NCBI RefSeq assembly: GCF_000143415.4
Contig: NW_003314269.1
Coordinates: forward strand, 644,401-708,400
Length of the DNA: 64,000 nucleotides
Direction: 5' to 3'
From: Selaginella moellendorffii
Lineage: Eukaryota > Plantae > Lycopodiophyta
Both the position numbers and the translations under genes were made by a program. How positions within the stretch are numbered: the stretch's first letter is position 1; every line of letters begins with the position of its first letter. Below the pieces are notes generated by a model. It worked only from the letters and a program-made list of their open reading frames with translations. It was not told the DNA's origin and searched no databases. Below are positions 7,854 through 35,588 of the stretch, one piece after another.

Positions 7854-8978
7854 ATGAGGAAGCACCAGTTTGCGAGCGCTCCCAGCAGCTACTGCAGCAA
7901 TTTGGTGGTGATGCTCTTCGCGCTGATCGTGGCCTTCACGCTCGGATTTCTAGCGTCTCCAATTGTGAGAACTTCTCCTAGCTCGCCTCCTCCTCTCCAA
8001 TCTTCATCATTCCCTTCCTCGTCGCCCTCTTCGTCTTCTTCCTCCTCCGCTGCATTGACCGCGTGCTCGTCTTCATCGCCGTCGATCCAAGAGAAGAAGG
8101 AAGCGAATCTGGGCGACAACGTGGCGAATATCCAGCCCCAATCCGACGATGGATTCGTGAGCCACGTCAGATCGCTGCCGGACGACCTCCTCCGCTTCCA
8201 CTACGACTGCCAAGCGGCGCCGTCGCGGGGCCGAGACGCCGCCTCCGCTCGAGCGGCCGTCATTGACGAGGTGTTTGACGGCACGTCGCCCTTCACGGCC
8301 TTCCCGCCCCCCCACATTGCCCGCCTCCTCAAGCCCCACAAGATCAAAGGCTGGGGCTCAGATCACCCCGTGTTTGCGCGCCTCGTCCAGGAAATCCGCC
8401 CCAAAATCGTGGTGGAGCTCGGATCCTTCCTGGGCGCGTCGGCGATCCACCTCGCCAAGCTCATCCGCGAGCAGCAGCAAGGCGGCAGTGATTTCGTGAT
8501 CTTCTGCCTGGATGATTTCCGGGGCTGGCCAGGGTTTCGCAAGGTCTTCACGGACATCCGGCAGGAGCACGGCAATGTCATGCTCTTCAACCAATTCTTG
8601 CAAAATGTGGCCTTCTCCAACGCCAGCGACAACATTGTGCCGGTGCCATTCTCCACCAACACGGGGCTCTACAAGCTGTGCGAGCTGGGCATCTCGGCGG
8701 ATCTGATTGAGGTGGATGCCGGGCACGATTTCCACTCGGCGTGGACGGACATCAATCTCGCGTGGTCGCTCATGCGGCCCGACGGCAAATCCATCATGTT
8801 TGGGCACGATTACTTTAATGGAGCTGACTACCACGGCGTGCGCAGGGCGGTGGATCTCTTTGGGCGTCTCAAGGGGCTGCGGGTGGAGCCGGATGGGCAG
8901 CACTGGATCTACAGGAAGTTTGATGGGAAGAAGCCCAAGGGGAAGAAGAAGAGGGGAAAGGAGGAATTGCCCCTTTGA
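7854..8978 (+). CDS. Class I SAM-dependent methyltransferase (Methyltransf_24-like) with N-terminal transmembrane anchor, intronless
   Basis: 374-aa ORF with a TM segment, Ser-rich stem, motif I VVELGSFLGASA, DLIEVDAGHD and IMFGHDY. Confidence 0.88.
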   Translation: MRKHQFASAPSSYCSNLVVMLFALIVAFTLGFLASPIVRTSPSSPPPLQSSSFPSSSPSSSSSSSAALTACSSSSPSIQEKKEANLGDNVANIQPQSDDGFVSHVRSLPDDLLRFHYDCQAAPSRGRDAASARAAVIDEVFDGTSPFTAFPPPHIARLLKPHKIKGWGSDHPVFARLVQEIRPKIVVELGSFLGASAIHLAKLIREQQQGGSDFVIFCLDDFRGWPGFRKVFTDIRQEHGNVMLFNQFLQNVAFSNASDNIVPVPFSTNTGLYKLCELGISADLIEVDAGHDFHSAWTDINLAWSLMRPDGKSIMFGHDYFNGADYHGVRRAVDLFGRLKGLRVEPDGQHWIYRKFDGKKPKGKKKRGKEELPL

Positions 8979-11069
8979 AAAGTAGCAATATACTTGCTTG
9001 TTTTTCAAAGTAAAACTATTAGATTAAAATAATTATATCTTATAAACATACTTACACTTTATCATAAATATTTATTTTATCTAACTTTGATTATGTTCCT
9101 GGTAAACTCAAAAGCACATCCCTAAGTCTAGGGTGTTCCTAATTTCTCCCATTCAAGGATATTTTAATTATATATCCTTAAAATATTTCAATTGATTAAA
9201 ATATTAAAAAACAAATAGGAATTATTTTAAAATATTGAAATTGGAATTAAAATAATATATAATTTTTATTTTTATTAGGTTTTTAGGAGCTTGTTGGGAG
9301 ATGACAAAACTAATAATGAAATATTAAAACAATGGAGAAGAAAATATGAATTTGTGTTAAACACTCTTGCTCTCAAAACTAATTTAAGCCAATCCTTAAT
9401 TAATCCAAATTAGGTAGTAGTAGCCATGACAAATACATAAATAACACCTTAAACTGGTAAAAAATATAGAGAGATAGCAAATACATAAATAATTAATGTG
9501 GTGTTAAGTGGATATTGCTATTGGAAATTTACAACTAACTCAAAAACATGAGCATGATGAAATAAAAGTTTCAAAATATAATCACTAAAGGAATACTCAA
9601 CCCAATCTATCAAATAATAAAATATGTTTAATTATATGACAATGAAATGTAATTGCATGTTGTCCACATATGTTATAACACTTTCACAATAAGGCATTTT
9701 AGTGTCTCCAAAACATTAGAATTAATTAAATAATAGTTTTGATGATTTTATATATGTAAGTATATTGAAAACTTTATACATACTTGTGATATGTGTTAAT
9801 AAACTAAAATGTTATAACATAAAATTCTCTAACCCTTTCTTCTTGCTCTAGACTTTGTAAATTTAATTTTATAAATTTGTTTATTAATTTTTCACCTTCT
9901 TGAATATTTGATAGTTTCTGATATTAGTACTTTAAATTAACCTCAAAGTCCTACTCATTAATAATAGTGGTGGAGACTCTAGAAAATCAAAAAAAGTCTA
10001 AAAAAAAATAATTTATATAGTGAGTTGTGTTAAAAGAATAGTGATTTTAGAGAAACATTAAATGAACTGTTTATAAAAATTTGTAAAGGAAAGGTGTGAG
10101 GGCCAAGTGTACAACTACGATGCCGTATACTAATATTAACGTAGTGGGATTTTGGTAGCTGTCGGATTGGTTTCAATCTGGACCACTTGCTCTTATATAT
10201 AAGCTAGGGTTTTTGGGTTAATTGATATGCACATTTCTATTTTCCCTTTCCATATTCCAGACACTCACATTGGTGGAGATGAAGAGCACCTTTGATTGTT
10301 CCTAAGGAATGCTTGGATTTGGGATTTTGATTTAGATTTAGCTTTTGCATTGTCTAGATTTAGCTTTTTTCATTTCCTTTCTTTTGTTCTTTCTTTTCAG
10401 GGTTTTGGTTTAGATCTAGCTTTTTGCGTTGTTTAGATTTACCATTTCCTTCTAGCTTTTTGTCATTTCTCTTCTTTTGCTCTTTCTTTTTCGTTCATCT
10501 TCATAGCAGATCAGCAATCTCCTCCTTTGACTCTAGAGTAGCAGTTGGTACAATTGCTTGATGCTATGCACTTGCAATTAAACAACCAAACTCAGTTGAT
10601 GGCGGCGTTCATGGCACATGGTACAACTCCTCTTACTCTTGGTGCCAATCCTCGCGTTCGGCCAGAGTTCTTTCGTGGGAATCTTGGGGATGATGTGTAC
10701 CATTGGTTTGATCACTTCACGGTGATTGCCACATATCATTCTTGGGATGATACTTGACGTTTACATGAGTTCCCCACATGTCTCCAAGGGATGGCATTGT
10801 AGTGGTACAATGGATTGAGCATAGCCACTCGTGGCGATTGGAGTGTTCTTTCGGATGTCTTCAAATGCGCCTTCGGACATGCCGACGATTGTTATGATGC
10901 CTTCAAACAATTGCATCGTCTTCGCCAAGGGCCATCTGAGTCAGTGATGCAATTTGGCGTTCGTTTCCGAAGTCTTTTGCTTCGTGCGGAGCCCAATATG
11001 TCGGAGCGGATCAAGCTAGGAATGTTGTGGCCAGCACTTCGTCAAGATCTTGTCGGACTTGTGCATGCA

Positions 11070-12213
11070 TGTAAGCCACAAATTTTTCCTTTCCCATTTG
11101 CCAGCTTACCTCGTATATCCGTTCGACACTGCCTTGGCTTTTGCTAAGTTCCCTTGCCAAGGTTCTCGCCTATGGTACCAACTCCTACTTGGTCCTACTT
11201 GGTTTCAGCTACTCACTGCACAAGCAATGGAGCGTTAGCCATCCATCCACGGATTCCCAATCTCTCCCAATCCCCCTCCCCGAGTTAGACTGGACTTAAG
11301 GTTCGGCTACACTCCCCGCAAGCACAAGCAGCCAAGCACACCAAGCTTCCAGGTTCCTAACATCCTTTGGTACCACAAGACTTAATCATGGGACCCTCTA
11401 AATCCCAAGTCTTGAGTGCAACACTTGCTTCGGGACGCCGGGGCGAAACACCGTGTCCTAGCGGCCTGGTATGGGTACCTCTACCCCCCCACTTCCATCC
11501 CGAAGGAAGGCCCAAGCCCCTAGGAAGGGCGAGGACCAATGAGCCGCATGGTACTCAAGTGGGGCACCACTCCACATGAGCCGGGAGCACCGCAATCGGT
11601 TTCCCTTTCGGGAGTGGGAGCTGCTCTTGAGCACTTCCTTGGATGGCCCCTCCGGCACCAGCCAAGTCCATGCTCACTCCCACCTAAGGCCCCTCGGTCC
11701 CAGTCTCAACCTCAAGTCGGTTTGGGAGCCCCACTGGAGAGTCCCTTCAAAACTGGTTCCTGGACCTCACTCTCCCTACTATACTTTTGGAACCCCCTGC
11801 AGCCCCCTCCCCCTGGGAGACGCACGCTTTGGGCTTTCACCCCTTGACCCGTATTAGTATTTGAACTTAGTCTCTGGCTCAATCTCGGACTTGATTTCGG
11901 ATCCGACTTTGGATTCGGTCTCGGACTCGATCTCGGACTCGATCTCGGACCCGACCTCAGACCCGACCTCGGACTCGACCTCGGACTCGGTCTCGGACCC
12001 GATTTCGGATCTCGGACTCCGTCTCAAACTCGGTCTCGAACTCGGTCCTCGAGTCAGCCTCAGACTCGATTCCGGACTCTATCTCGAACTCGGTCTCCGA
12101 GTCGGTCTTGGACTCGATCTTCGACTTGGTCCTATCTAATGAACTCTTTGTCATTTTGTCATGCTTTTGGGGTTCCTTTAGCCTACGACACCTCGGCGAG
12201 TTGGTTCCTTACA
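11070..12213 (-). mobile_element. Solo LTR of family B inserted in the gag of A1
   Basis: TGTAAG...TTACA, about 1144 bp, flanked by 5-bp TSD ATGCA; homologous to LTR 26006-27154; the uninterrupted empty site (LVHALAPATL) is present in copy A2 at ~14910. Confidence 0.93.
11878..12130. repeat. ~12-bp degenerate tandem array (TCGGACTCGATC-like) inside family B LTR; also at ~20452-20690 and ~26806-27070
   Basis: Visible periodicity; unit number differs among the three LTR copies; source of the SDSISD-type ORFs. Confidence 0.85.
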
Positions 12214-12357: not shown

Positions 12358-15300
12358 TGTCGCGAATGTGACTTCGGGTATCGAAAGATACTTGTCGACT
12401 AGTCCTTACGGGCACTCTTTCCTTACTGCCATGACGGCAGGAGGTCGGTACCGTTGGTTCCCTTTATTGGCCCCTCTTGTCCAAGTGTTAGTAAACTGGA
12501 TTTAGCATCTGTACTTGGCCAGATGAGCATAAGGAAGGAATTCCTAAGTGTCTATTTAGCCAAGCATATTTGGCCTGGCTTGTTAGTTCTCTTTTGCTCT
12601 GTCTTGCACTGGTTTGGCAAGAACCCTCGCATATTAAGACTAGTCCCTCAATATCGCCGGATGATAGCTTACCGTGTCTGCCAAACACCCTTGCTATCAC
12701 GCCCTTTGTGTTGGTCTCATTTCGGTCCCAAATGTTATTTATGGAAAGTGTCTAGATTAGCTCATTTGGCATATCTACGGAATGTAGAGATCGGCCTAAA
12801 CACAATGGTGTTCGTCCCATGTCCAAATTCACAATTTAAGGACATTCCATATTTAGTAAGTTTCGGACTTGTCCCAGAGACTAACTCCTGGTACTAAGGG
12901 AGGCTTGGGGTGAAAGCCCAAAGCATGTGTCCTTCAGGGGGGGAGGGCTGTGGGGGGTTCCAAATGTATAGTAGGGATAGTGGTTGGAATGCATGTCCAA
13001 CCACCTGAGACATTAGTTTGGCTTCCGCTGGGCTGTGTCGCTCCTTGTTCTGCGTCCGGCTTGAGTTTAAGCCCAAGCTCCACGCTGCTCTAGTCGGTGG
13101 AGTACCCTCCTTCTCGTGTTAGGCCACCGGTATGCCAAAATTGTGCCAGACTCCGTTTGACACCATTTTGCGTGCAGGTGCTGGATACGGGGAGTTGGTG
13201 CTCTTGGGATTGTACCGGACCCTCGTTTCGTAGCGCAACGGGCTTGGAGTTCGGCTCCAAATTCAGGTGCGCTACATTTGGTATCAGAGGGATTGTCTCA
13301 GCAACTCCTATCCAACTTTTGTCTGATTTTCTGACTCAAGTTGCATACGTAGAGACTTTTCTAGTAGATCCGAAGCGACCTGTGTAGGATTAGTTGGATT
13401 GCATCATTCGGTAAGAATGTTGTATGCATGTTCAGTTACTGATAGAGGCATGCATGCAGCTAGCGGGATGGTGAAATGGAACCGTGCTGATGACGTTGAA
13501 ACCTCTAGATGGGCGAATCGAGAGGAGGAAACTCCTACTAGAGGTGCTACGGAAGAGGCAGAGGCTGAGTCAGAAGAGGAAGAGCCAGATGCTGCGGCGC
13601 TGCAGTGTACGGCTCAAGAAGTCGAGATCGAGAATTTGTGAAAGGAGATTCGCAAATTGAAGAAGGAGAACAAGAAGAGGAAGAAAGAGGTTGAGGCAGC
13701 TAAACCAGCTAAGCCTAAGCAACCAGACTCCTCTTCGAGTTCTGAGGACGATGAAGTTCTGCAGCCGCCCCCGGTTGCACGAGTTTCAAAGTTCAAGCCC
13801 CCGAAACCACCCAACTTCAGAGGCATGCGGGACAATCAGGTTTTGGGGAAAACTATTTCATAGCGGCAGACGTAGATAATTGTACGAAAGTTGCGTGTGC
13901 GCAATCCTTTCTCACCGATCATGCCAAAACTTGATAGTCCCACATGCCTCTGAAGTTGGGTGGTTTCGGGGGCCAAGTGTACGGCTACGATGCCGTATAC
14001 TAATATTAGCGTAGTGGGATTTTAGTAGCCGTCGGATTGGTTTCAATCCGGACCACTCGCTCCTGTATATAAGCTAGGGTTTTTGGGCTAATTGATATGC
14101 ACATTTCTGTATTCTCTTTCCATATTCCATGCACTCACATTGGTGGAGGTGAGGGGCACCTTTGATTGTCCCTGGGGAGTGCTTGGATTTAGGATTTCGG
14201 TTTAGATCTAGCTTTTGCATTGTCTAGATCTAGCTTTTTCCATTTCCTTTCTTTTGGTCTTTCCTTTCAAGATTTTTGTTTAGATCTAGCTTTTTGCATT
14301 GTCTAGATTTACCATTTCTTTCCAGCTTTTTGTCATTTCTCTTCTTTTGCTCTTTCTTTTTCATTCATCTTCATGGCCGATCCGCAATCTCCTCCTTTGA
14401 CTCTAGAGCAGTAGTTGGTTCAATTGCTTGACGCTATGCGCTTGCAATTGAACAACCAAACTAAGTTGATGGTGGCATTCACGGCACATGGTACAACTCC
14501 TCTTACTCTTGGTGCCAATCCTCGTGTTCGGCCGGAGTTCTTTCGTGGGAATCTTGGGGATGATGTGTACCATTGGCTCGATCACTTCACGGGATGATGC
14601 TTGACGTTTGCATGAGTTCCCCATATGTCTCCAAGGGACGGCATTGCAGTGGTACAATGGATTGAGCGCAGCCACTTGTGGCGATTGGAGTGTTCTTCCG
14701 GACGTCTTCAAACACGCCTTCGGACACGCCAAGGATTGTGATGATGCCTTCCAACAATTGCATCGTCTTCGCCAAGGGCCATCTGAGTTGGTGATGCAAT
14801 TTGGCGTTCGTTTCCGAAGTCTTTTGCTTCGTGCGGAGCCAAATATGTCGGAGCGGATCAAGCTAGGAATGTTGTGGCCAGCACTTCGTCAAGATCTTGT
14901 CGGACTTGTACATGCACTTGCTCCTGCCACTCTTGACGATGCTCTTTGCTTGGCACAACGTTATGAGACGTCGCCTCTTCCACTTCTTGCTACACGTCCT
15001 TCAGCTCCACTTCGTATGAGTGATGGTCCTGTTCCCATGGAGGTTGATGCTGCTCCTACTCGAGTCCAAGGACAAGGGCAAGGACATGGTTGTGGCCGTG
15101 ATGTTCGTTGCTGGGCGTTGATGAAGTTGGTCATATTTATCGGCGTTGTCGGCGCTTTCCGGATTGGCGACCTCCATTTCCTGGGTGGAGACTTTGGCGT
15201 CAGCAACGTCCCGTTGGTGCTGCTGCGGTGAAAGGTTTGGATACCGACATGCATTCCGGAAACGAGGAATCACGCGAGTAATGGAGGGACCTTGCGCGAA

Positions 15301-18300
15301 TAAGTTAGTGACTCCTCCATCTTTCTTTCGAGAGTATCATCAAGGGGTTCACTTGGCACGGGTTCATCCAGTGTTTACTTTCCAAGCTCGTTTTTATAAC
15401 AAGAGGTCTCCTATTCTTCTCTCCATGTTGGTTGATACAGGTTCGAGTTTATTTTCTATTGCTCAACCTGTTTCCACACATTGTCGTCTACACTTGCATT
15501 GTGCGGCGGATCCAGTTTTCATTCTTTATGGCAACGGCCGTACACATGCATGTGCACGAGATGAGGCGGACCTGGTTGTGCGTGTGGGCGATCTCGAGCT
15601 TGAGTTGCAGTCGTTGCGGGTGGTGCCGAGTCAAGCTTTTGACCTCATTCTTGGTATGGATTGGTTGCAGCGCAATCATGCCAAGTGTGACTTTGAGGCT
15701 TCTCCCCCTTGTCTCATACTTCCTTATGTTTCATCCATTCCTCTCACTTCCGTACCTCTTCGTCCCTCTACTTGTACCTCTGCTTCCATTACTTTTGTTC
15801 CCCCACTATTTCCTCTTGTGTTTCTATCTTGTTCTGCTCTTCCCTTTTCCGATCCCTCCGATGATCTTTGTGTTGCAGCTGTTGACTAGCTCATGAAGGA
15901 GTATTCTGATCTCTTTGACTTTGACCTATCGTCTGGGGCCAAGATTGCCACATGTCATCCCATTCCAACCGGGGATGCTCGTCCAATCAAGGTTCCTGTT
16001 CATCATCGGTCACCCAAGGAGATCAAGATTTTACGTGCCAATGTCAAGGAGATGTTAGAGAAGGGTGTTATTCGGAAGTCGCGGAGTCCTTGGGCATGTG
16101 AACCTCATCTTGTGACGAAGCCTGATGGGAGTATTCGTTTCTGCATCGACTATTATCCATTAAATGAAGTGACGATCTCGGATGTGTACCCTCTTCCTCA
16201 CACTGCTGATCTCTTGGATCGTCTGGGGCGAAGTTGTTGGTTCACCAAGCTAGATCTTGCTTCTGGGTATTGGCAAGTACCGATGGCCAAAGAAGATATT
16301 CCTAAGACTGCTTTTTGTACACCATTTGGTTTGTACGAGTTCTTGGTGATGCCGTTTGGTTTGAACAATGCTCCAGCAACTTTTCAGCGGATGATGGACG
16401 AGGTTCTTTGCAATATGCCGGAGTTGACGGCTAACTTCATTAATGATGTCTTGATCCACTCGGAGGGGACGTGGGAGGAGCACATTCGTGATGTTTGTAA
16501 AGTGTTGGATCGGCTACGCGACGTTGGTTTAAAGCTGAAGCGGTCAAAGTGTGTGTTTGGGTCCAAAGACACAACTTATCTTGGGTACTGTATTTCTCGT
16601 GAGGGTTTGCAAGTTGATCCTGACAAACTTGTGGGTGTTCTAAAGTTCCCTACTCCAAACTATGTGAATGATGTGCAGCGCTTTTTGGGTAAGGTGCAGT
16701 ATCTCGGTCGTTTTGTGGATCATCTTTCCGATCGCACTACACCATAGCGAGCGTTGCTGAAGTCATCAACGTCATCTTTCATCTGGTCTCCGGATTGTGA
16801 GCGGGCGTTCGTGAATCTCAAAGAGCTATTGACGACTCCTCCGGTTTTGGCATATCCTGATTACACTCGAAATTTTATTTTGCGCGTGGATGCTTTTGAC
16901 ATTGGTCTTGGAGGTGTGTTGATGCAAGAAAGCTCGAGTGTGCCTGGTCAGCACCATCCCATTGCATACATAAGCCTTACATTACAACCAGCGGAGATGA
17001 ACTACTCCACGACGGAGAAGGAATGTTTAGCAGCAGTCTGGGGTTTCGAGAAACTTCATGCATATCTACATGGTTCTCGGACGTTACTTGAAGGTGACCA
17101 TGCTGCTGTTATTTCATTATTGATGCGGAAAAACCTGGTTGGTTGTACGGCTCGATGGGCTTTAAAGCTTCAGATATATGATTTCGATGTTGTTCATCGC
17201 CTAGAGAGTTCTATGGCTGATGCTGATGCCCTTTTTCGAGCTCCTCTTCCTTCTCCACTCATTTCTCATGTTTCTGACGAACCTGTTGTTCCAGCATCTG
17301 TGGATTTTCTAGATGAGGATTCTGTGACGTCAGCGGTTGTTGTCCTTGACGTTCAGTGTCCATAGGGCGCAGAACAAGATCTACCTTCTCTTGATGAGGT
17401 TCGCGAGGCTCAAAAGATTGAGCCATGGATTCGAAGGCTTCGAGATGGGTTTGAGAATCCTGCATCACTTGCTGATGACTTGCCTTTCCGGCATTTACAT
17501 TCTCAATATCGCTTTGAAGATGGCCTTCTTTATTTTGTGGGGACGGATTCTGATGATCATTTACGGCTGGTGGTGCCTTTGGTATTTATTCCACGGTTTC
17601 TCCATGCCTACCATGATTTTCCTGTTCTAGGTGGGCAAATGGGACACCGTCGTGTCACCGAGAAGTTGCGCAGGTCTTTCTATTGGTCAGAGATGCGACG
17701 TCAAACGTCAAACGTCAAACGTATCGAAAAATACTTGTCAACCAGTCCTTATGGGCACTCTTTCCTTACTGCCATGACGGGAGGAGGTCGGTATTGCTAG
17801 TTCCCTTTATTGGCCCCTCTTGTCTAAGTGTTAATAAACTGGATTTAGCATCTGTACTTGGCCGGATGAGCATAAGGAAGGAATTCCTAAGTGTCTATTT
17901 AGCCAAGCATACTTGGCCCGGCTTGTTAGTTCTCTTTTGCTCTGTCTTGCATTGGCTTGGCAAGAACCCTCGCGTATTGAGACTAGTCCCTCAATATCGC
18001 CGGATGATAGCTTACCGTGTCTGCCAAACACCCTTGCTATCACGCCCTTTGTGTTGGTCTCATTTCGGTCCTAAATGCTATTTATGGAAAGTGTCTAGAT
18101 TAGCTCATTTGGAGATCGGCCTAAACACAATGGTGTTCATCCCGTGTCCAAATTCGCAATCTAAGGACATTCCATATTTAGTAAGTTTCGGACTTGTCCC
18201 AGAGACTAACTCCTGGTACTAAAGGAGGCTTGGGGTGAAAGCCCAAAGCGTGTGTCCCTCAAGGGGGAAGGGGGGGGGGGGGATGTGGGGGGTTCCAAAT

Positions 18301-18611
18301 GTATAGTAGGGATAGTGGTTGGAATGTATGTCCAACCACTTGAGACATTAGTTTGGCTTCCGCTGGGCTGTGTCGCTCCTTGTTCTGCGTCCAGCTTGGG
18401 TTTAAGCCCAATCTCCACACTGCTCTAGTTGGTGGAGTACCTTCCTTCTTGCGTTAGGCCACCGGTATGCCAAAATTGTGCCAGACTCCATCTGACACCA
18501 TTTTGTGTGCAGGTGCTGGATACGGGGAGCTGGTGCTTGTGGGATTGTACCGGACCTTCGTTTTGTAGCGCAACGGGCTTGGAGTTAGGCTCCAAATTCA
18601 GGTGCGCTACA
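12358..18611 (+). mobile_element. LTR retrotransposon family C (Met-PBS, gag related to B), internally deleted, inserted in the gag of A1
   Basis: 5' LTR 12358-13276; PBS TGGTATCAGAG at 13279; gag from ATG 13468 (KFKPPKPPNFRG..KVACAQSFLTDHAK) truncated at ~13933; 3' LTR 17721-18611 lacking its first ~20 bp; TSD TGCTG on both sides. Confidence 0.85.
13970..17700 (+). mobile_element. Family A copy A2, truncated at both ends, lying inside element C
   Basis: LTR 13970-14139 missing its first ~5 nt; PBS TGGTGGAGGTGAGGGG; gag, protease (LVDTGSS), RT (KLDLASGYWQ, MPFGLNNAPATFQ, FINDV), RNase H (DAFDIGLG, TTEKECLA) and integrase Zn-finger start; several stops. Confidence 0.9.
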
Positions 18612-21555
18612 TGCTGCTACTCGAGTCCAAGGACAAGGGCGAGGAGGTGGTCATGGCCGTGATGTTCGTTGCTGGGCGTGTGATGAAGTTGGTCATACTT
18701 ATCGGCATTGTCAGTGCTTTCCGGATTGGCGACCTCCATTTCCTGGGTGGAGACCTTGGCGTCAGCAACATCCCGTTGGTGCTGCTGCGGTTGAAGGTTT
18801 GGATACCGAGGTGCATCTGAGAAACAAGGAGTCGCGTGAGTAGTGGAGGGACCTTACATGAATAAGTTAGTGACCCCTCCATCTTTCTTTCGGGAGTATC
18901 ATCAAGGGGTTCACTTACCACCGGTTCATCTAGTGTTTACTTTCCAAGCTCGTTTTTATAACAAGAGGTCTCCTATTCTTCTCTCCGTATTGGTTGATAC
19001 AGGTTCGAGTTTATCTTCTATTGCTCGACCTGTTGCCACACGTTGCCGTCTACACTTGCGTCGTGCGGTGGATCTAGTTTTCATTCTTTATGGCAACGGC
19101 CGTACACATGCATGTACACGAGATGAGGTGGACTTGGTTGTGCGTGTGGGCGATCTTGAGCTTGAGTTGCAGTCGTTGCAGGTGGTGCCGAGTCAAGCTT
19201 TTGACCTCATTCTTGGTATGGATTGGTTGCAGCGCAATCATGCCAAGTGTGACTTTGAGGCTTCTCCCCCTTGTCTCATACTTCCTTATGTTTTATCCAT
19301 TCCTCTCACTTCCGTACCTCTTCGTCCCTCTACTTCTACCTCTACTTCCATTACTTTTGTTCCCCCACTATTTCCTCTTGTGTTTCTATCTTGTTTTGCT
19401 CTTCCCTTTTCCGATCCCTCCGATGATCTTTGTGTTGCAGCTGTTGACTAGCTCATGAAGGAGTATTCTAATCTCTTTGAATTTGACCTATCGTCTGAGG
19501 CCAAGATTGCCAGACGTCATCCCATTCCAACCGGGGATGCTCGTCCAATCAAGGTTCCTGTTCGTCGTCGGTCACCCAAGGAGATCAAGATTTTACGTGC
19601 CAACGTCAAGGAGATGTTGGAGAAGGGTGTTATTCGGAAGTCGCGGAGTCCTTGGGCATGTGAACCTCATCTTGTGGCGAAGCCTGATTATCCGTCCGAC
19701 ACTGCCTTGGCTTTTCCTAAGTTCCCTCGCCAAGGTTCTCGCCTATGGTACCAACTCCTACTTGGTCCTACTTGGTTTCAGCTACTCACTGCACGAGCAA
19801 CGGAGCATTAGCCATCCATCCACGGATTCCCAATCTTTGCCAATCCCCCTCCCCGGGTTAGACTAGACTTAAGGTTCAGCTACACTCCCCGCAAGCACAA
19901 GCAGCGAAGCACACTAAGCTTCCAGGTTCCTAACATCCCTTGGTACCACAAGACTTGATCATGGGACCCTCTAAATCCCAAGTCTTGAGTGCAACACTTG
20001 CTTCGGGACACTGGGGCGAAACACCGTGGTCTAGCGGCCGGGTATGGGTACCTCTACCCCCCCACTTCCATCCCGAAGGAAGGCCCAAGCCCCTAGGAAG
20101 GGCGAGGACCAATGAGCCGCATGGTACTCAAGTGGGGCACCACTCCACATGAGCCGGGAGCACCGCAATTGGTTTCCCTTTCGGGAGTGGGAGCTGCTCT
20201 TTAGCACTTCCTTGGATGGCCCCTCCGGCACCAACCAAGTCCATACTCACTCCCACCTAAGGCCTCTCGGTCACAGTCTCAACCTCAAGTCGGTTTGGAA
20301 GCCCCACTGGAGAGTCCCTTCAAAACTGGTTCCTGGACCTCACTCTCCCTACTATACTTTTAGAACCCCCTACAGCCCCCCCCCCCCCGGGAGACGCATG
20401 CTTTGGGCTTTCACCCCTTGACCCGTATTAGTATTTGAACTTAGTCTCTGGCTCGATCTCGGACTTGATTTCGCATCCAATTTCGGATTCGGTCTCGGAC
20501 TCGATCTCGGACCCGATCTCAGACCCGACCTCGAACTCGACCTCGGACTCGGTCTCGGTCTCGGACCCGATTTCGGATCTCGGACTCTGTCTCGAACTCG
20601 GTCCCCGAGTTGGCCTCGGACTCGATTTCGGACTCTATCTCAAACTCGGTCTCCGAGTCGGTCTTGGACTCGATCTTCGACTTGGTCCCATCCGATAAAC
20701 TCTTTGTCATTTTGGTCATGCTTTCGGGGTTCCTTTAGCCTATAACACCTCGGCGAGTTGGTTCCTTACAGCTCCACCACCCATAGAAGAAGTTCGATGC
20801 CCACATCGAACGTCTTTCTTTTGATCCTACGACTTGTTGACCATGTCTCCGGGGGCATCCCCCCACTTAGCAGTGTGCCTAAGTTAGCTTCCCCGACCAA
20901 GAGCCCATGACAATGGAATATAGGTGTCCCTATACTCCTCACCTCACCACGCACTAGTATGGGGTCGGGACTTGAACCCAGCCTTGCTTTACTAGGGGGT
21001 TGGGACTCGAACCCAACCTCCGTAGAATATATCTACGGATTCGACATCCCCGTAGGGAGTCGGGTGTAGCTCCCTACGCCTAGTCGACTTAGCTAACCCA
21101 TGCTAATTAGCTTACCTTCGGTGCGCCTTCGGGTCCCAACATATGCCATTGCTCAACTTCACAAATTGATACTTTAATTGAACTTTGCATAAGTACATAG
21201 AGTTCTGCCTTGCAAAAATTCCTCCACTAGATCTCGCGCGTTCGCTAGGTTCTCCTCCGGTTCCCATGTTGCTTCGCAGTGTGGAAATCTTTTCCACTTC
21301 ACATGGAACTCTCTCACCTCGCGTCCTTTTCGCTTGCTCTTGCGCGCATTGAGGATGGCCTCGACTTTGTATTCCTCTTCCCCTTGGATAACCTCAGGTA
21401 AAGGTCTTACTTGGTCCTTGCAAAGCGGATCCTCAAAATACGGGTTGAGTAAGTTCACGTGAAACATGGGATGCATCTTCCCCATCTCTCGAGGAAGTTG
21501 GAGTCGGTAAGCCACTTTACTGATTCGAGCCTCAATCTCGTAAGGCCCCGCGAAC

Positions 21556-21607
21556 CTGCTTAACGAACTCAAGATCAATTCTTTTACAGGAATACATGCA
21601 TTTTTAC
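21556..21607 (-). other. 52-nt GT-AG spliceosomal intron in integrase C-terminal region of element B
   Basis: AAG|GTAAAA...TTAAGCAG|G; removal restores K-L-T-Q-R-F-A-G-P-Y-E-I and puts the chromodomain in frame. Confidence 0.85.
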
Positions 21608-22025
21608 CTTTGGGTCAACTTCCGGCTGATCCCACTTGGTAGCCTGAGGTTCTTGGTGTTCAGCCACACCTTCTCCCCAGCTTGGAACTCTACATCCCGG
21701 CGCTTCTAGTTTGCGTACTTAGTTTGCCTTTGTTGAGCTCGTTCCAAGGAATCCCTCACTAGATTCCAAATGTTGAGTCTTTCCGCTGTGAAGGCCTCCA
21801 CTACGGGTAACTCTCCATGATACTCGGCCACGCCGAGTTCCACAGGACCTTCAATAGCTCGCCCATTGATGACTTCCCATGGACTCACCCCGATACTCGA
21901 ATGTGGTGAGTTGTTATAACACATTTCCGCAAGTCCCAAATGACTTACCCAATCGGTCTGGTCTCCCGATACATAGCATCGCAAATAATCCTCCAACTGC
22001 TTATTCACCCTTTCCGTTTGTCCGT

Positions 22026-22072
22026 CTGTCAAGAAGTGTTAGTGCCACTAAACTTGACTTAATACCCCATAC
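22026..22072 (-). other. 47-nt GT-AG spliceosomal intron in integrase core of element B
   Basis: CAG|GTATGG...CACTAAC ACTTCTTGACAG|AC; removal restores H-P-Q-T-D-G-Q-T-E-R-V-N. Confidence 0.85.
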
Positions 22073-25000
22073 CTGTCTGTGGGTGATAGGCTGTGCTGAA
22101 TTTCAACTTGGTGCGATACTGTTCCAGGAGAGTCCTCCAGAACCTACTAGTGAGGATCTTATCTCGATCTAAGATGATCTCTTTCGGCCTTCCCCGCAGT
22201 TGAACCACTTGTTCAAAGAACAGCTTCGCCACACCTTCCGCATCCACTTCCGTTGTGGTGGGTATGAAATGTGCCATTTTCGAAAATCAGTCCACCACCA
22301 CGAATATCGCATCAAACCCCTTGCTTGGGGGAAGTCCCGTGATGAAGTCCATCGTAAGACATTTCCACGGACGATCTGGAATTGGGATGCTTTGCAACAA
22401 GCCCCCACTAGCCTTAGTCACGGCTTTGACCTGCTGACATGTTGGACATGTCTTTACATAGTCTTGGACGTCCTTAGCCATATCTGGCCAATGGTACTTC
22501 CTCTTGAGTAAGCCCATCGTCTTGGGCACTCTGCCGTGTCCCGCAAGAAGTCCGTCATGACACTCTTCTAAGGCTACCTTCCTTAGTTCCCCTTCTGGAA
22601 CATACACCCTCGTTTGCTTGTAATAGATGAGTCCGTTGCGTTCTGCATAGCCCGTTTTCTCTTCCGTTGGCAGCTCACCTCTTTGGTGAGCTTCCCGTGC
22701 CTCTAGATTCCTCAGCAACACTTCTTGTGCTAGACCATCGTTCTCATATGCTGTCTGCACATCATCCCAGAAGGTTGCTGTTGCGCTGGATATCGCTAAC
22801 CTCAAGCTCACTTTTCGACTTAGCGCATCTGCCACAATGTTGCTCTTCCCAGGCTTGTACAGAATCTCGCAATCAAACTCGGCCAAGGCATTGGCCCACC
22901 GACCTTGTTTCCCTCTCAGGTCGGGCTGTGACAAGAAGTGTTTCGTTGCCACATTGTCCGTGTAAACCTTGAAGTGTCTCCCAAGGTAGTGTCGCCACTC
23001 CTTGAGTGCCTTGACCACTGCAAACAATTCCTTCTTGTGGGCAGGCCACTTCCGTTGAGCCTTGTCCAACTTCTTCGAGAAGAACACTACTGGATGGTTG
23101 TCTTGCTTCAAAACTGTGCCCAACGCAAAGTCTGAAGCATCCGTTTCTACCTCAAAGTCCTTACCAAAGTTTGGTAATGCCAACACGGGAGCCTTCCTCA
23201 ACTTCCCTTTGAGGTGGACGAATGCCGCCTCGCATTTCGCTGTCCATACCATCTTCCCTTTTCCTGTTTGGTCCGTTAAGGGCAGGGCTACTCTCGAATA
23301 GTGTCTGATAAACTTTTGGTAGTAGTTGCATAGCCCCAAGAACGCCCTCAACTCATGTACATTCGATGGTCGCTCCCATTCCTGGATCGCTTGGACCTTC
23401 TCCGGGTCCACCTTGAGCCCGTCCTGGCCCACCACATGCTCGAGAAACTTTACCTCTTGTTGAGCAAAGTCACATTTGCTCTCTTTAGCATACAGTTTGT
23501 GTTCCCTTAGTTTCTCAAACACCTTCACCAAGTGTTCGACATGCTTCTCTAGCGTCTCGCTATAGATCAGGATGTCGTTGATATAGACGACCACGAAGTG
23601 ATCCAGATAGGGAACAAAGATGTGGTTCATCAACGCCGAAAACGTTGCTGGCGCATTGCACAGCCCAAAGGGCATCACCAGAAACTCAAAGCTCCCATAC
23701 CTCGTTCGACAGGTTGTCTTTTCGACATCTTCCTCAGCTACCCTGATCTTGTAGTATCTTGAGCTTAAGTCAATCCTCGAGAAGTATTTTGCCTTTCCCA
23801 ACCTATCGAACAGGTCCTCAATCCTTGGCAAAGGATACTTGTTCTTCTTGGTATACTTGTTGAGCAACCGATAGTCTATGCACATGCGCATAGATCCATC
23901 TTTCTTTTTCACAAATAGTACCGGCACCCCATACGGTGACTTGCTCAACCTAACATACCCTTTGTCCACCAACTCCTCTAATTGGCGCTTGAGCTCCGCG
24001 AGTTCTTTTTCGTTCAATCGATAGGGTGGACAAACCACCGCCTCAGCACCCTCGACCAGCTTAATCTTATGTTCTATCGGTCGTGCGGGGGGCAACCCCG
24101 CCGGTAGCTCCTCCGGCATGGTATCCTGGAATTGGTCCAACACCCGCTGGATCACTAAAGGTACTTCTTCTGTTCCAATCTTTTTATCACTTCTCATCGA
24201 GAGTAAGCACAAAAATGCAGCCTTGGTCCCTTTAGTGAGTTGTCCTCTTGTGGACACCAGGTTCAGGCACGAATCTTTGGCCTTGCATTGCCTTACCTTT
24301 AGATCCTGGGCCTCCACCCTGGATCTTCTTCCTTGGGCATTCGCCAATACCACAAGGTTCCTACTTTGTCCATGTAGGGCTACCACGAACCGATTGAACT
24401 AGTCCATCCCAAAGATCACGTCAAATCCCGCCATGTCCAACACGGTGAAGTCCATGTTTACTTTCCAAGTCCCTACTTCGACTCTCGCTTGTCAAAGTAC
24501 CTCATCGGTGCTTTGGCTACCTTGAACAAACTCTATAGTCTTTGGTTCGCCTAGCCGCTGCATCGTTAATCTGGCTTGCCGGACTATGTCTGCAGCCACA
24601 AAATTATCCGAAGCACCCGTGTCAATAAGGATCTTAACAAAGCTACCTCCGAGCTTCCCTCAGAGGGCTAGTAGATATAACGAACGACTCTCTACCAAAG
24701 TTGCTCGTGTAATGAGTAACTTTGAGTTAGGGACTGGATCACATACCTCAATTTGGATTTCACCTGACTTGATGGCCATATTGGCTCTGGCCTTCTTCAG
24801 GTAGGGACATTCCCTCGAAAAGTGTCCCCCTTCACCGCAGTTGTAACATACATTGTTTCCCACGCTGCTATATGACTTGACCTTCTTATCCGTGGGTTTG
24901 TCTTTTTTCGCTTGACTCCCCCACGTACTCGCTCGCTGGCCACCGGATTTGCCTTTCCGGAACCCCGAGGACTCATTCTTAGAGAAACTCTTCTTGAATT

Positions 25001-28000
25001 TCCCTCTGCTATACGTTCCTCTTGGTTTGGCCCCTTTGCTAAACGTGGATCCCAACCCTGTCGTGTTCCCCTTTCTTAGGTTATCGTTGAAATGCACCTT
25101 GATGGCCGCATCTAACGCTTCCTTGTAGTTGGTCGGGTTCCAGCGCATCACCTCACCGCGAGCCCAGGTTTGCAAACCTGATATGAAGGCATGGAACGCA
25201 TCCATATCCCCCATGTCCGTGACAAGTATCCTCTTTGCCATGAACCCATTCACATATTCCTAAATGGTTCCAGTCTGCTTCAGCCTACTCAGCTCATCTC
25301 TCAGATGCAGAGTGGCATTCGGAGGAACGTATGTTGCACGGATCCTCACCTTCATCATGTCCCAAGTGGCCACTGGTCCTTCGTTGGCCTCCGTCATTCT
25401 CCACCAAGACTTGGCATTATCTGCCAAGTATGGTTTTGCACATGGGACCTTCTCCAAGCTCGGTAATCGTAACGCTTGGAAGTAGTCCTCCATATCGTAA
25501 AACCAATCCTCCACCACCTTATAGTCATTCACTCCCTTGAAGACCGGTGGGGGCTTTGGTTTGTACTTGGGAACTGCCTGAGGGACTGATTCTACTTCGG
25601 TCTGTTCGACCTTGTTTGGTTCTGCCTCAGTCCCTGCCGAAGGGTCTGCACCTTCTGCACTGCCAGCATCCGCAGTCTTTCTCTTTTTCTTCCGCTTCTC
25701 GTCATGCTTTAGCTTGCGTACGAGAGTCTCTAGCAGGGCATTGGTCTGTGTCAACTGTCCTTCTAGCACGTCCAATCGAGCCTTGGACGACCAAACCTCG
25801 CCACCAGACTCCTGTTTGGAAGTTTCCTCACTAGAGTCCTCCTCATGCAAGGATTCCTCATTCATAGCCTCTTGTTCGACCGGAGGCTCCAGCTCCGGTG
25901 GAGGTTTCGTCTCTGCCTGGGTTTGCTTACGCCCTGCCTTTGCCATCTCCCAGCAATCCGCCTCTATCCTTCGCTAGAACTGAGGAAAATGCTCCGATAC
26001 CAAATTGTAAGCCACAAATTTTTCCTTTCCAATTTGCCAACTTATTTCGTCTATCCGTCCGACACTGCCTTGGCTTTTCCTAAGTTCCCTCGCCAAGGTT
26101 CTTGCCTATGGTACCAACTCCTACTTGGTCCTATTTGGTTTCAGCTACTCACTACACAAGCAACAGAGCGTTAGCCATCCATCCACGATTCCCAATCTCT
26201 CCCAATCCCCCTCCCCGGGTTAGACTAGACTTAAGGTTCAGCTACACTCCCCGTAAGCACAAGCAGCGAAGCACACCAAGCTTCCAGATTCCTAACATCC
26301 CTTGGTACCACAAGACTTGATCATGGGACCCTCTAAATCCCAAGTCTTGAGTGCAACACTTGCTTCGGGACGCCGGGGCGAAACACCGTGGCCTAGCGGC
26401 CCAGTATGGGTACCTCTACCCCCCCACTTCCATCCCGAAGGAAGGCCCAAGCCCCTAGGAAGGGCGAGGGCCAATGAGCCGCATGGTACTCAAGTGGGGC
26501 ACCACTCCACATGAGCCGGGAGCACCGCAATCGGTTTCCCTTTTGGGAGTGGGAGCTGCTCTTGAGCACTTCCTTGAATGGCCCCTCCGGCACCAACCAA
26601 ATCCATACTCACTCCCACCCAAGGCCCCTCGGACCTCAAGTCGGTTTGGAAGCCCCACTGGAGAGTCCCTTCAAAACTGGTTCCTAGACCTCACTATCCC
26701 TACTATACTTTTGGAACCCCCTGCAGCCCTCCCCCCGCCCCTGGGAGACGCACGCTTTGGGCTTTCACCCTTTGACCCGTATTAGTATTTGGACTTAGTA
26801 TCTGGCTCAATCTCGGACTCGATTTCGGATCCGACTTCGGATTCGGTCTCGGACTCGATCTCGGACTCGATCTCGGACTCGATCTCGGACCCGATTTCGG
26901 ACCCGACCTCGGACTCGACCTCGGACTTGGTCTCGGACCCGATTTCGGATCTCGGACTTTGTCTCGAACTCGGTCTCGAACTCGGTCCTTGAGTCGGCCT
27001 CGGACTCGATTCCGGACTCTATCTCAAACTCGGTCTCCGAGTCGGTCTTGGACTCGATCTTCGACTTGGTCCCATCCAATAAACTCTTTGTCATTTTGGT
27101 CATGCTTTCGAGGTTCCTTTAGCCTACGACACCTCGGCGAGTTGGTTCCTTACACATTCGGATTGGGATGGTTATTTGCCGTCTCATCGGTATGCTTATG
27201 TCACAGGGGTGCAGAGTTCTATTGGTGCTTCACCATATAAACTTCTATATGGTTATGATCCAATATTACCAACGGAGCTGGGTTTACCTTTGCGATTGCC
27301 ACAAGCTCCTGATGCTAGGTCATGGGATCAATATTTAACGAGCATTCTTCCACTTGTCCGAGCAAAGTCTACTGAACACTTAGGCTGCGTACAAATGGGA
27401 CAACAATGGCGCTACAACTCCCATCATCGTCCACCTGCAGAGTACAAAGTGGATGATTTGGTGTTAGTCCGTTTTCCCTATCTTAATGGAAAGGACCATA
27501 TTGGGTGTTGCGGCAAGTTGGACCGCAAGTTTATGAGGTTCGGCATGACATCCAGTAGGCCGATCCTTCAGAGATTGTGCATGTGCAGCGGTTGAAACAC
27601 TTCATACAAAGGGATCAGGAGCAGTTAATGCCGTCTATAGATCCACTGATGCCTCCTCCTGACATTCCTCTAGATCTCAGCCCATCTGCAAGAGAACCCT
27701 GATAGCCTTCCATTATTCCGAGAGGAGGGGATGATGTGAGGGCTAAGTGTACGGCTACGATGCCTTATATTAATATTAGTGTAGTGGGATTTTGGTGGCC
27801 GTCGGATTGGTTTCAATCTGGACCACTCGCTCTTATATATAAGCTAGGGTTTTTGGGATAATTGATATGCACATTTCTATATTCCCTTTCCATATTCCAG
27901 GCACTCACAAAGGAAATATTTAACATCATATATAAAAATTACGTGTTACTATTTAAAACTAGTGATAATTTTGGCATAATTCATAATGGTGTTGTCTAAA

Positions 28001-28242
28001 GACCCAAATGTCTTAAATTAAATATTTTTTCACCTAAAAAAATTTCTTAATTGTAAAATTTACTTACTCCATCTATATATTATTTTACCTCCTCTCAATG
28101 AATTTTATTGATAGGATAATAAGACTCAGTTGTATAATAAATTTATAGCATTAATAAGGTATGTGGTTGGAAGTTTAATATAGAAGGATTTTCACTAAGA
28201 AAAAGTATAAAAACTTTACTTGTAAGTTAAAACAAAAGAGCT

Positions 28243-29842
28243 TTAAATTCTTGATGATATAGTAAGCTCAAGAGGAACTGCTCTAGGTAGTGTCAAACCA
28301 GATCCTTCACTCATATCAAGTTCCTTGCCGCTAGGGTTCTTCCACTCAAAGCCATGCACAAGGTTGGCCAGGACGAAATGCACCACTCGCAAACCAAGCT
28401 GGATTCCGGGGCACCCTCTTCTTCCAGATCCAAAAGGGAGCATCTCAAAGTCGCGCACGCCAACAATGTCGATGTTTCTCTCCACAAACCGCTCCGGCTT
28501 GAACTTGAGAGGCTCCTCCCAGCAGCGCTCATCCCTGGCGATCTCATAGTTATTGATGAAGACCCGTGTTCCCTCCGGAACAAAGTAGTCCATCATCTGG
28601 CATGGCTGTGCGGCCTGGAAGATGAGTATCGCACCAGGCGGATGGAGACGAAGGGTTTCTTTCACCACTGCGCCCAGATAGACGAGTTTGTCGAGGTGGG
28701 CTTCTTCTACCTTGAGTGACGATGGCCCGACCACGCTGTGTAGCTCTTCCAGGAGCCTGGACATGATTCTGGGATTGTTGATGAGCTCCGCCATCGCCCA
28801 CTCGATCGTCACTGCGCTAGTGTCTGTTCCAGCACCGATCATGGCCTGCGAATAGAGATCATAACAATAGTTTCCAATGCTAATTTAACAAGATCAGGAA
28901 CTCACCAGGACGATTGCCTTCATGAAGGAATCCGACTTGGAAAAGAGCTCGTTTCGCAGCATTATGCTGATGAAATCGTCGCCAATATCCGCGCCTTTCC
29001 TGCGCTGCTCGTCGACCAGCCGCTGCATGTACTCGTCAACTTGCTTGTACAAGCGCTTGGCATGGGCCGCTTTTCTCAAGTCGAGCCACTGCAGCCATGG
29101 CATGGTGTCTCCCACGTAAAAGTCTCCCGCCGCGACGAACACCTCCTTTAGCAAGTGCTTAAACCGCAGAGCTTCCTCGTTCCTCCGGTGGCCATTCCCC
29201 ACAACTTTTCGCAAGATCATGCCGTAAGTAACATCCGAGATCACCTGCGTGAGGTTAACAGTGCGCGGCATTGGACCCCTCGAGGCCTTCACAAGCTTTG
29301 CCACGGCCAGAGCCATCTCCTCGGCTCTCGCGGCTTGCGAGAGCTCGATTTGCCTCAACGTCAGTAGCTCCAGAGTGCAAAGCTTCCTCACGTTTCGCCA
29401 GTACTCGCCGTAGGGCGTCCATAGAATTCCATCGGCACCGAAAATCTTGCCTGGATAGATAGAACGAGCGTCGAGGGTCACAGTCTACAGACTCAATTAT
29501 CACTGGACACTGACCTGGTGTTAGGAAAGGCCTGGAAGAATAAGTGGAGTCGCGGACTCGGATGGCCTCTCTGGCGGCTTGGGCAGAGGAGATGACCAAG
29601 TGAGGAGAGCTCCCAAACTTGAGGAACACACAGGGGCCGTGCTCTCGAGCGATTTCCCCGAAGGCACGGTGGAGATGCTTGCCAAGAACCAGATGCAAGT
29701 GCCCGATTAGCGGGAGTGCTCTTGGCGATGGCGGCAGCGAGCATCCAGCTCCTCCAGATGGTGGGCGAAGAATCCATGATTTCACGAGGAGAGCCACGGA
29801 GAGCCCGAAGAGCACTGCAAGCGGAGCGATCCACGTCTCCAT
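28243..29842 (-). CDS. Cytochrome P450, CYP71 clan (A-type), copy 1; exons 29842-29515, 29450-28906, 28845-28243
   Basis: TM anchor, LPPSPRALPLIGHLH, PYGEYWRNVRK, AGTDTS, KETLRLHPP, FKPERF and heme motif PFGSGRRGCPG; two GT-AG introns. Confidence 0.95.
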
Positions 29843-30275
29843 AGCTCTCGCAAATTAGCAAACTCTATTAATTGACTTTGAAGTCACCTGGAGTCGGTCG
29901 AGTTTTTCTCATTTTGTTTCTTTTTTTCTTTTTTCTTGACCAGTAAAAGGAAAAAGTTCTAGAATGAGAGCGTTTCTTTCTGAGAAAGGTCATTTAAACC
30001 CGAATCCATTGGCGTTTATAAAAATTACATAAAATCTTTCTTGCGAGAGTTTTAGCTAGCGCTGGCGATGGAGCTCTAACAATCTCTCATGCATGGAAGA
30101 GAGAGAGAGAGAGAGATTAATCTTCTAAAAATTTAGTGCTAGCGATGGAAGGAGAGAACCAATCTAGCTCTCAAAAAAAATTATGCGAACTTTGCATAGA
30201 GAGAGAGAGTTTACCGAGTTTCTCTACCTAGGGCTTTTGCTCCTAGATCGGTCGATCAATCCATTGATCGACCCA

Positions 30276-31590
30276 ATGGCGTCGGCGTCGTGGGCGCTGC
30301 GGCTGCGCGAGCTGAGTGAAAGGTATGGCAAGGTCGCGGTGGGCGTGCATTTCTCCGTGTCCGCCATCTCCACCGGGACCATCTACCTGGCCATCAAGAA
30401 CAACGTCGATGTGGTAGCGCTCCTGGAGAAAGTGGGGCTCGTCTCCAAGAAAGCCCCCGAGGACAAACCCAGCGGCGACGCCGGAGTGGAGCAAGTCTGG
30501 AGCGAATCCGAGGAGAGCAGCGGCAGTCCCGACATGGCCCAGAAGATCGATGATCCCAGCGACGCCGACGCCGACCCTTCTGCTCCTCCGTCCAAGGAGA
30601 AGAAGCGATCGGATGGGGCCATGGGAGCTCTGGGCCTGGCTCTTCTCTGCAACAAGGCTCTCTTTCCAGTCCGTGTTCCAATCACTGTCATGCTCACGCC
30701 GCCAGTTCCTCGCCTCCTCACCCGGACTGTGATCCATGCCATCCTGCTTCCACGAATCGAGAGCTCCATTTTTTTTTTGGCTTTGCTCTCTTTTGTTCGA
30801 GCCCAATCCGACGATGGATTCGTGAGCCACGTCAGGTCGCTGCCGGACGACCTCTACGACTGCCAAGCGGCGCCGTCGCGGGGCCGCGATGCCGCCTCCG
30901 CCCGCGCGGCCGTCATTGACGAGGTGTTTGACGGCACGTCGCCCTTCACGGCCTTCCCGCCCCCCCACATTGCCCGCCTCCTCAAGCCCCACAAGATCAA
31001 AGGCTGGGGCTCAGATCACCCCGTGTTTGCGCGCCTCGTCCAGGAAATCCGCCCCAAAATCGTGGTGGAGCTCGGATCCTTCCTGAGTGCGTCAGCAATC
31101 CACCTCGCCAAGCTCATCCGCGAGCAGCAGCAAGGTGGCAGTGATTTCGTGATCTTCTGCCTGGATGATTTCCAGGGCTGGCCAGGGTTTCGCAAAGTCT
31201 TCACGGACATCTAGCAGGAGCACGGCAATGTGATGCTCTTCAACCAGTTCTTGCAAAATGTGGCCTTCAACATTGTGCTGATGACATTCTCCACTAACAC
31301 GGGGCTCTACAAGCTGTGCAAGCTGGGGATCTTTGCGGATCTGATCGAGGTGGACGCTGGGCACGATTTCCACATGGCATGGACGGACATCAATCTTGCG
31401 TGGTTGCTCATGCGGCCCAACGGCAAATCCATCATGTTTGGGCAAGATTACTTCAATGGAGCCGACTACCATGGCGTGCACAGGGCGGTAGATCTCTTTG
31501 CGCGTCTCAAGGGGCTGCAAGTCAGATGGGCAGCACTGGAAAGAAGCCCAAACCCGGGAAGAAGAAGAACAGGGGAAAGCACCCCTTTGA
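30276..31590 (+). pseudogene. Chimeric DUF1279::methyltransferase gene at the duplication junction; open to a stop at 31214, then degraded methyltransferase 3' end
   Basis: 30276-~30725 matches the gene at 51038; ~30800 onward matches the methyltransferase from ~8136; premature TAG at 31212 and deletions further 3'. Confidence 0.85.
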
Positions 31591-34240: not shown

Positions 34241-35108
34241 CCACTAGGTTTAAATAATATTGGACTATCTCAAAAAGTCCAAATTTAGAAGCTTACATTT
34301 AATATTAGAGGGGTTTCAGGTTTAACTTTGTTGGTTTGCCAAAAAATCACACCATATATTTAAATTAGCATTTGGTGGATTAAGTTTGATTGGCTAGCAA
34401 ATTATATTATATGTTGAGATTGACATCTAATGGTTTAGGCATAACTTTCAACTCCCATTCACAAGGATGTGAAACATGTTAAATTACAATCAACTAAAGA
34501 GAATAAATTGAGAAATGATCTATTATAACTTAAATATAAAGGGATTTACTTTTTTCTTCTAATTGCTCAGAAGCCAGAAGACTTCTTTCTTACTTGCATT
34601 TTCACTCTTTTATGTCTTCTCATAACACTTGTTTGTTTTTTTTTTCTCTCATAAAATTTAATTATGTTTGAAAGAATTGTTTTTTTATATAGTAAATAAT
34701 TTTTAGTTAATAATATATATAATATATATAGAGAGAGTATTATTATTTGCATAATGAATTTTATTGATTGGATAATATAAATCAACCATATACTAAGATT
34801 ATAGCACTAATAAAATAATTAAGATATGCAGTTGGATGATAGATTTTAACTAAGAAAAAGTTTTAAAAGTTTTTCTTGTAAGTTAATACAAAATTTCATA
34901 CTCTGATGATACAATTGTTTTTTGCATTGATCAACCCTATAAAAAATAATATATAACTTCTTGTAAGTACATAGCAAATAAAGTTGCAGATTCACCAAAC
35001 ATGTATATACTTAGAGAGTTTTATTTATATATGTAAGTAGATAAAGAAGATTTCTTCATATATTTGTAAAGCATATAACTATTTATTCTTTAATAAAAAT
35101 AAATTTGA

Positions 35109-35588
<480 letters not shown>

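Follow-up and report, generated by a model that had tools for sequence, protein, structure and literature searches.

The window, i.e. the whole 64-kb stretch of DNA analysed, contains intronless PPR and mTERF genes, P450 and CDC20 genes, and LTR retrotransposons; the mTERF open reading frame matches SELMODRAFT_408106 of Selaginella moellendorffii with 100% identity. The host introns of the window, located in the P450 and CDC20 genes, have lengths of 60, 65, 59 and 87 nt and contain CTAAC-type branch motifs. The cytochrome P450 gene with its 60-nt intron is part of a segmental duplication (28241-31518 and 49034-51249, 97-99% identical), of which a further partial copy is found at 8198-8880 (90-97% identical). 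An AT-rich tandem array at 34961-35600 (GC ~0.2, periods of 8-12 nt) lies between the duplicated block and a gypsy element on the minus strand (37301-42920), the LTRs of which are ~95% alike.

The subject of this analysis, element B, is located on the minus strand with its 5' LTR at 26052..27154, as delimited by blastn against the 3' LTR at 19689..20770, just ahead of which a purine-rich tract, GGGTGGTGGAG, is found. Both LTRs start with TGTAAGGAACC; in the blastn alignment they are 91.5% identical when gaps are counted, and the 50 mismatches over ~1,100 nt correspond to a mismatch of ~4.5%. Between the LTRs, a single gag-pol reading frame (21174..25946, minus strand) extends from the ATG at 25946 to the TAA at 21176..21174 and encodes, in this order, Gag with a CCHC knuckle, a protease with the motif DTGAS, reverse transcriptase (RT), RNase H, an integrase with H2C2 and core domains, an SH3-like GPY/F domain and a chromodomain. 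Pfam recognizes RVT_1 (2e-34), RT_RNaseH (8e-30), Integrase_H2C2 (2e-20), rve, SH3_Tf2-1 (2e-13) and Chromo (1e-15), and DTGAS is located upstream of the Pfam-detected RT. With two LTRs around an internal region and the domain order PR-RT-RNase H-IN followed by a C-terminal chromodomain on the integrase, element B is consequently assigned to the Ty3/gypsy chromoviruses.

This particular copy is dead, as it possesses six in-frame stops in gag-pol (25262, 24662, 24494, 24401, 22289 and 21708) besides the mismatches between its LTRs. At position 21708, almost all DNA of the family in the DNA sequencing run X1 reads CAG where element B has TAG, and transitions make up the overwhelming majority of the differences between element B and other copies. 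Neither a clear target-site duplication nor a canonical tRNA-type primer site could be made out at the edges of the LTRs in this decayed copy.

Together with 46 nt of leader, another LTR of this family is found at 11070..12213 (minus strand; 93% to both LTRs by blastn). It represents a truncated copy, since no internal region of the family adjoins, and its blastn alignment with element B continues to 26006; a second pol of the family was not found in the 64-kb window by tblastn. The truncated copy at 11070 and many X1 DNA contigs diverge from element B at the same position, 26006, which suggests that the LTR and the 46-nt leader are shared with different internal regions, for instance those of deletion derivatives or non-autonomous relatives. 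The LTR at 11070-12213 adjoins a nest of other repeats, in which 10100-11038 resembles 13970-14885. A different LTR element occupies 12378-18571 on the plus strand; its LTRs (12378-13236 and 17721-18571) are 93-94% alike, and its RT shares only 32% identity with that of element B.

With respect to relatives, the best matches of element B in protein libraries are 45-57% identical. The element was searched in separate pieces: a 703-aa query from RT to integrase found no relative above 57% identity in either of two protein libraries, and a 105-aa query from the middle integrase exon found no match in the protein libraries. Some unclassified chromoviruses of S. moellendorffii have been noted (PMC6317226).

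Two introns in the integrase

The integrase is interrupted by two short insertions on the minus strand, intron 1 of 47 nt at 22072..22026 (GTATGG...TTGACAG, phase 1) and intron 2 of 52 nt at 21607..21556 (GTAAAA...AAGCAG, phase 2), the coordinates and GT...AG ends of which reproduce those given in an earlier note on this DNA. Intron 1 splits the Asp codon (G/AC) that links HPQT to GQTERVN and sits immediately ahead of the catalytic Glu in the D,D,E triad. Intron 2 splits an Arg codon (AG/G) between KLTQ and FAGPY, where the integrase core gives way to the module of SH3-like GPY/F domain and chromodomain. The middle exon (DGQTERVN ... KLTQR; 21608..22025, 418 nt, minus strand) carries one private stop, the one at 21708, and the last exon (21177..21555, minus strand) encodes the SH3-like GPY/F domain and the chromodomain as recognized by Pfam SH3_Tf2-1 and Chromo. 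With lengths of 3n+2 (47 nt) and 3n+1 (52 nt), the insertions move the integrase reading to another frame and then back. Retention of intron 1 ends the open reading frame four codons on, before the catalytic Glu, and retention of intron 2 places a TAA directly after the Arg codon.

When four uninterrupted homologs (P0004, P0014, P0019 and P0022) are aligned by tblastn, the pol alignment breaks solely at both intron sites. Exact removal of the insertions rejoins HPQT-D-GQTERVN and KLTQ-R-FAGPY, as had been proposed, with no residue lost compared to the four homologs, and the distance from HPQT to GPY amounts to 142 aa in element B with the introns removed vs 141-145 aa in the homologs. The unchanged spacing and the breaks in the homolog alignments indicate that the insertions are additions and not intronised coding sequence. 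As the boundaries are defined by protein homology and not by the GT and AG dinucleotides, the probability to find GT and AG at all ends by chance is ~(1/256)^2, about 1.5e-5, which puts a figure to the previous argument that two motif-restoring GT-AG insertions are unlikely to be coincidental. Two library products that end oddly in the integrase, P0009 and P0025, turned out to come from metagenome contigs (L001-L003) and to be ordinary relatives with frameshifts or truncations, which have no intron at either site.

The insertions resemble host introns in composition, with an AT content of 60% for intron 1 and 68% for intron 2 compared to 51% for the coding sequence. Intron 1 possesses a branch-like motif, CACTAAC, 16 nt before its 3' end, which resembles the host motif TCTAAC; an obvious branch site is not present in intron 2. 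The earlier comparison with host introns holds for the size class, but its figure of ~50 nt is slightly low, as the host introns in the window measure 59-87 nt. A search for the source of the intron sequences inside the window gave chance matches of 9-12 nt alone.

Splicing in contigs and retention in DNA

Contigs and reads of four data sets bear on the use of these introns. X1 is a DNA run and X22 the sole certain RNA run, from which only 11 reads aligned, too few for any countable joint. X16, a 26-Mb contig set, and X18, the contigs of another study, are labelled RNA by a guess, and the strand, the phasing of the three introns per molecule (the third is described below) and isoform ratios lie beyond the contig data of both sets.

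The spliced form is found in X16, RNA by its guessed label. Contig 9 (2,500 nt, ~4.4% from element B) aligns to 23825-22073, 22025-21606 and 21553-21227, and both integrase introns are absent, the second break (21606/21553) being the intron 2 joint with a 2-nt GT ambiguity. The X16 bin depths over the introns, 8.24 and 7.92 vs 11.2, equal the full depth minus the intron length, which means that only the joined form has been assembled there.

The DNA run gives the opposite picture. On the 5.3-kb internal region, 56,846 contig pieces of X1 are placed with a summed depth of ~0.9 million, and the intron bins (903,917 and 890,208) show no dip vs their neighbours (810,065-999,035). A joint at the intron coordinates is absent among the best-supported X1 joints listed, of which the lowest has a depth of 171. 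As a genomic library would show the thousand-fold commoner intron-bearing form, X16 is argued to be RNA. Furthermore, X18 contig 13 (614 nt, 22211-21603), which is ~6% diverged, keeps intron 1. The insertions, ascribed previously to a lineage on the basis of one copy, are accordingly not limited to element B.

These data refute two readings, to which practically no weight is given. Insertions private to the element B copy, or chance GT..AG stretches, would fit the degeneracy of a copy with six stops, but are incompatible with the even depth in X1, the presence of intron 1 in X18, the exact absence of both introns from X16 and the chance figure derived above. Domestication of a gypsy integrase as a host gene with later gain of introns would account for introns as such, since they are usual in host genes; it fails on the full LTRs and the complete gag-pol order, and the enormous copy number and the in-frame stops in element B equally speak against it.

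The spliced contig of X16 and X18 contig 13 have the same letter at 24 of the 25 listed variable places. The variant 21643T, common to both, occurs in a single X1 contig (depth 133 of 769,737), and X16 reads C at 21789, as no DNA contig does. Expression seems to arise from one or few particular copies and not from the family at large. That one lineage marked by rare variants is encountered with and without intron 1 points to splicing and not to a separate intronless master copy.

Such a master copy nevertheless has to be weighed. A rare intronless processed copy could be the real autonomous element that is transcribed in X16, with the thousands of intron-bearing copies as integrase-defective passengers mobilised in trans. 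RNA contigs cannot separate splicing from a transcribed intronless locus, the expressed lineage is minor, with 21643T in one X1 contig, and one or few intronless DNA copies could sit below the depth of ~171 of the listed X1 joints. However, the same rare-variant lineage keeps intron 1 in X18, no intronless joint is among the best-supported X1 joints listed at a summed depth of ~0.9 million, and a rare master of so large a family is expected to leave many intronless descendants. This scenario is therefore considered quite improbable; moreover, an intronless copy would itself stem from splicing at these sites, so that the introns are functional either way. Cumulatively, the integrase introns are functional, are present in the DNA of most of the family and survive retrotransposition.

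A third intron over the protease and the proposed fates of the RNA

In addition to the two introns listed in the earlier note, a 157-nt alternative intron is located in the protease region (24746..24590, minus strand, GTATGT...CTGCAG). In its retained form this intron is coding sequence that holds DTGAS, and homologs align straight through it. X16 contig 10 skips 24746..24590; X18 contig 18 stops at the acceptor on the 24590 side, and its 28 loose letters agree with the exon upstream of the intron in a diverged copy. As X18 covers the retained form, too, skipping is seen in two studies, and one of them contains both forms. Upon removal of the intron the frame shifts and a stop follows two codons later, so that the open reading frame ends with ...SGEIQIET-stop. 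As read from the sequence, splicing in the protease region is predicted to give a Gag-only mRNA from the single gag-pol open reading frame. The X16 contigs cover 21227-25981, by which the spliced RNA seems to be full-length.

All three introns possess the GT..AG sense-strand ends of the U2 type (GTATGG..ACAG, GTAAAA..GCAG and GTATGT..GCAG) and are seen removed exactly at these ends across the transcript contigs, namely X16 contigs 9 and 10 and the loose end of X18 contig 18, from runs that are probably RNA, a label that is guessed. A 66-nt skip in X16 contig 11 (26047..25982, leader inside the 5' LTR) lacks GT..AG ends, for which reason it was dismissed as a candidate for a further intron, and reflects an indel between copies; loose contig ends at 26044 are just contigs that extend beyond the end of the aligned stretch.

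Element B is probably best described as the decayed representative of a Ty3/gypsy chromovirus family that is very abundant in S. moellendorffii; the transcripts of this family contain three ordinary U2-type introns and would be directed to separate fates. Introns are the classical marker erased by retrotransposition, and their retention in an element reveals how genomic RNA is distinguished from messenger RNA. From the replication of LTR elements and the introns kept in the DNA copies it follows that the RNA which is reverse transcribed must be unspliced, and new copies inherit the introns from this unspliced template. The unspliced RNA would encode Gag-PR-RT-RNase H and an integrase truncated four codons after HPQT. 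Removal of intron 1 would restore the catalytic core of the integrase, and additional removal of intron 2 would add the SH3-like GPY/F domain and the chromodomain. Removal of the 157-nt protease intron, on the other hand, would lead to the Gag-only mRNA and an excess of Gag as in copia, BARE and EVD. In this proposed division, unspliced RNA would serve packaging and variously spliced RNAs would serve translation, with complete integrase provided solely by a predicted isoform that retains the protease intron and has lost both integrase introns.

The integrase supply would then depend on host splicing, which the element apparently needs to make its own integrase, and splicing may plausibly act as a transposition switch. 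A complete cycle via two RNA fates, in which only unspliced RNA is packaged and copied, catalytic integrase with chromodomain arises only from twice-spliced RNA and the third splice provides the Gag excess, is put forward tentatively, with somewhat less than even confidence. A point that counts against the model is that, in the Gag-only mRNA, both integrase introns would be spliced at sites well beyond the stop, an arrangement that in plants should attract nonsense-mediated decay.

The introns might also be real and spliced, but neutral passengers, which were gained once in the ancestor of the family and persist since LTR elements package unspliced RNA, with integrase possibly supplied in trans by intronless chromoviruses. 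In favour of this reading, the gypsy element at 37.3-42.9 kb of the window, the pol of which is 40-45% identical to that of element B, has an integrase uninterrupted at site 1 (HPQTDGQSER), with a frame that decays further downstream, and the relatives L002 and L003 (~52% identity to element B) are uninterrupted at both intron sites. However, an integrase does not usually act on the LTR ends of a family to which it is only 40-45% identical, two introns with good splice signals have been kept across a family of thousands of copies, and the element has a third splice with a clear function for Gag. Neutral passage is hence regarded as unlikely.

The family is of interest beyond this locus. One of the largest families in a model lycophyte genome has an integrase that is unreadable without two splices. 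To annotation tools that rely on domains this integrase will look broken, so that they may misclassify the family or call intact copies defective. The family also offers a natural system to study how unspliced RNA escapes the spliceosome and gets chosen for packaging, whether splicing sets the integrase dose or chromodomain targeting, and whether host-like introns help to avoid RNA silencing or decay. Should the reading with two RNA fates be true, the chromatin-targeting module of the integrase could also be included or omitted, according to whether intron 2 is removed or retained.

Comparison with known intron-bearing retroelements

Only Ogre and EVADE are named as intron-bearing plant LTR elements in a 2025 review (PMC12786077). 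Ogre, a Tat/Ogre Ty3/gypsy element of pea and Medicago, is similar in that the intron is kept in DNA, is spliced from part of the transcripts and has to be removed for downstream pol (PMC6317226, PMC12786077). The Ogre intron, located between PROT and RT, is removed from only a fraction of the transcripts, which permits translation of the remaining polyprotein (PMC6317226). The element B family displays these features within one variant lineage, with the intron kept in DNA (X1), spliced in X16 and unspliced in X18, and with its removal needed for downstream pol; the logic of unspliced genomic RNA and protein from spliced RNA would be common to both. While the Ogre intron lies in the PROT-RT spacer, element B has two tiny introns of 47 and 52 nt in the integrase, one of them in the catalytic core. 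Element B is a chromodomain element outside the Tat/Ogre lineage, with introns in integrase and protease coding sequence, and, unlike Ogre, its family consists of compact lycophyte chromoviruses with an extra Gag-only splice. The earlier note had held that the spliced LTR elements known to it splice elsewhere, which stands with respect to the integrase position, although Ogre is the nearest precedent and a closer one than the note had granted (PMC6317226).

The protease intron, on the other hand, resembles the alternative protease-centred introns of EVD and BARE1, where a frameshift stop just past the junction likewise creates a Gag-only open reading frame (PMC5580714, PMC3735527, PMC12786077), and BARE has been described to maintain separate RNA pools (PMC3735527). 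A spliced Gag-only subgenomic mRNA is made by Drosophila copia, too. EVD, BARE1 and copia are Ty1/copia elements, whereas element B belongs to Ty3/gypsy, for which no such conserved splicing was found among the Arabidopsis elements by Oberlin et al. (PMC5580714). A protease-centred splice thought to be typical of Ty1/copia thus turns up in a Ty3/gypsy element, with both the retained and the skipped form in X18. In Ty1/copia, Gag-only splicing is coupled to premature termination, as in EVD, and to preferential polysome loading; in the X16 contigs of the element B family, early termination was not seen and the spliced RNA seems to be full-length over the span given above. If the reading with two RNA fates is true, the family has converged on the way in which copia elements express their Gag.

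Spliceosomal introns in genomic copies are also present in the Penelope-like retroelements (PMC4209133), which differ by their GIY-YIG endonuclease, target-primed reverse transcription and the lack of LTRs and integrase, and in which intron retention is explained otherwise. Retroviral splicing, the env splicing of errantivirus and Athila-type elements and the CERV mRNA of Cer1 provide further cases where one primary transcript serves as unspliced genome and spliced mRNA (PMC10309623). Such env and CERV splicing removes gag-pol to reach a downstream open reading frame, whereas splicing in element B repairs an interrupted pol domain. A search confined to published papers found none that describes introns inside an integrase, and, provided that the two RNA fates apply, element B would be the first case of an LTR element with a catalytic domain interrupted by introns. 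In comparison to Ogre, the element B family differs in its lineage, the number and size of the introns, their position in a catalytic domain and the added copia-like Gag splice.
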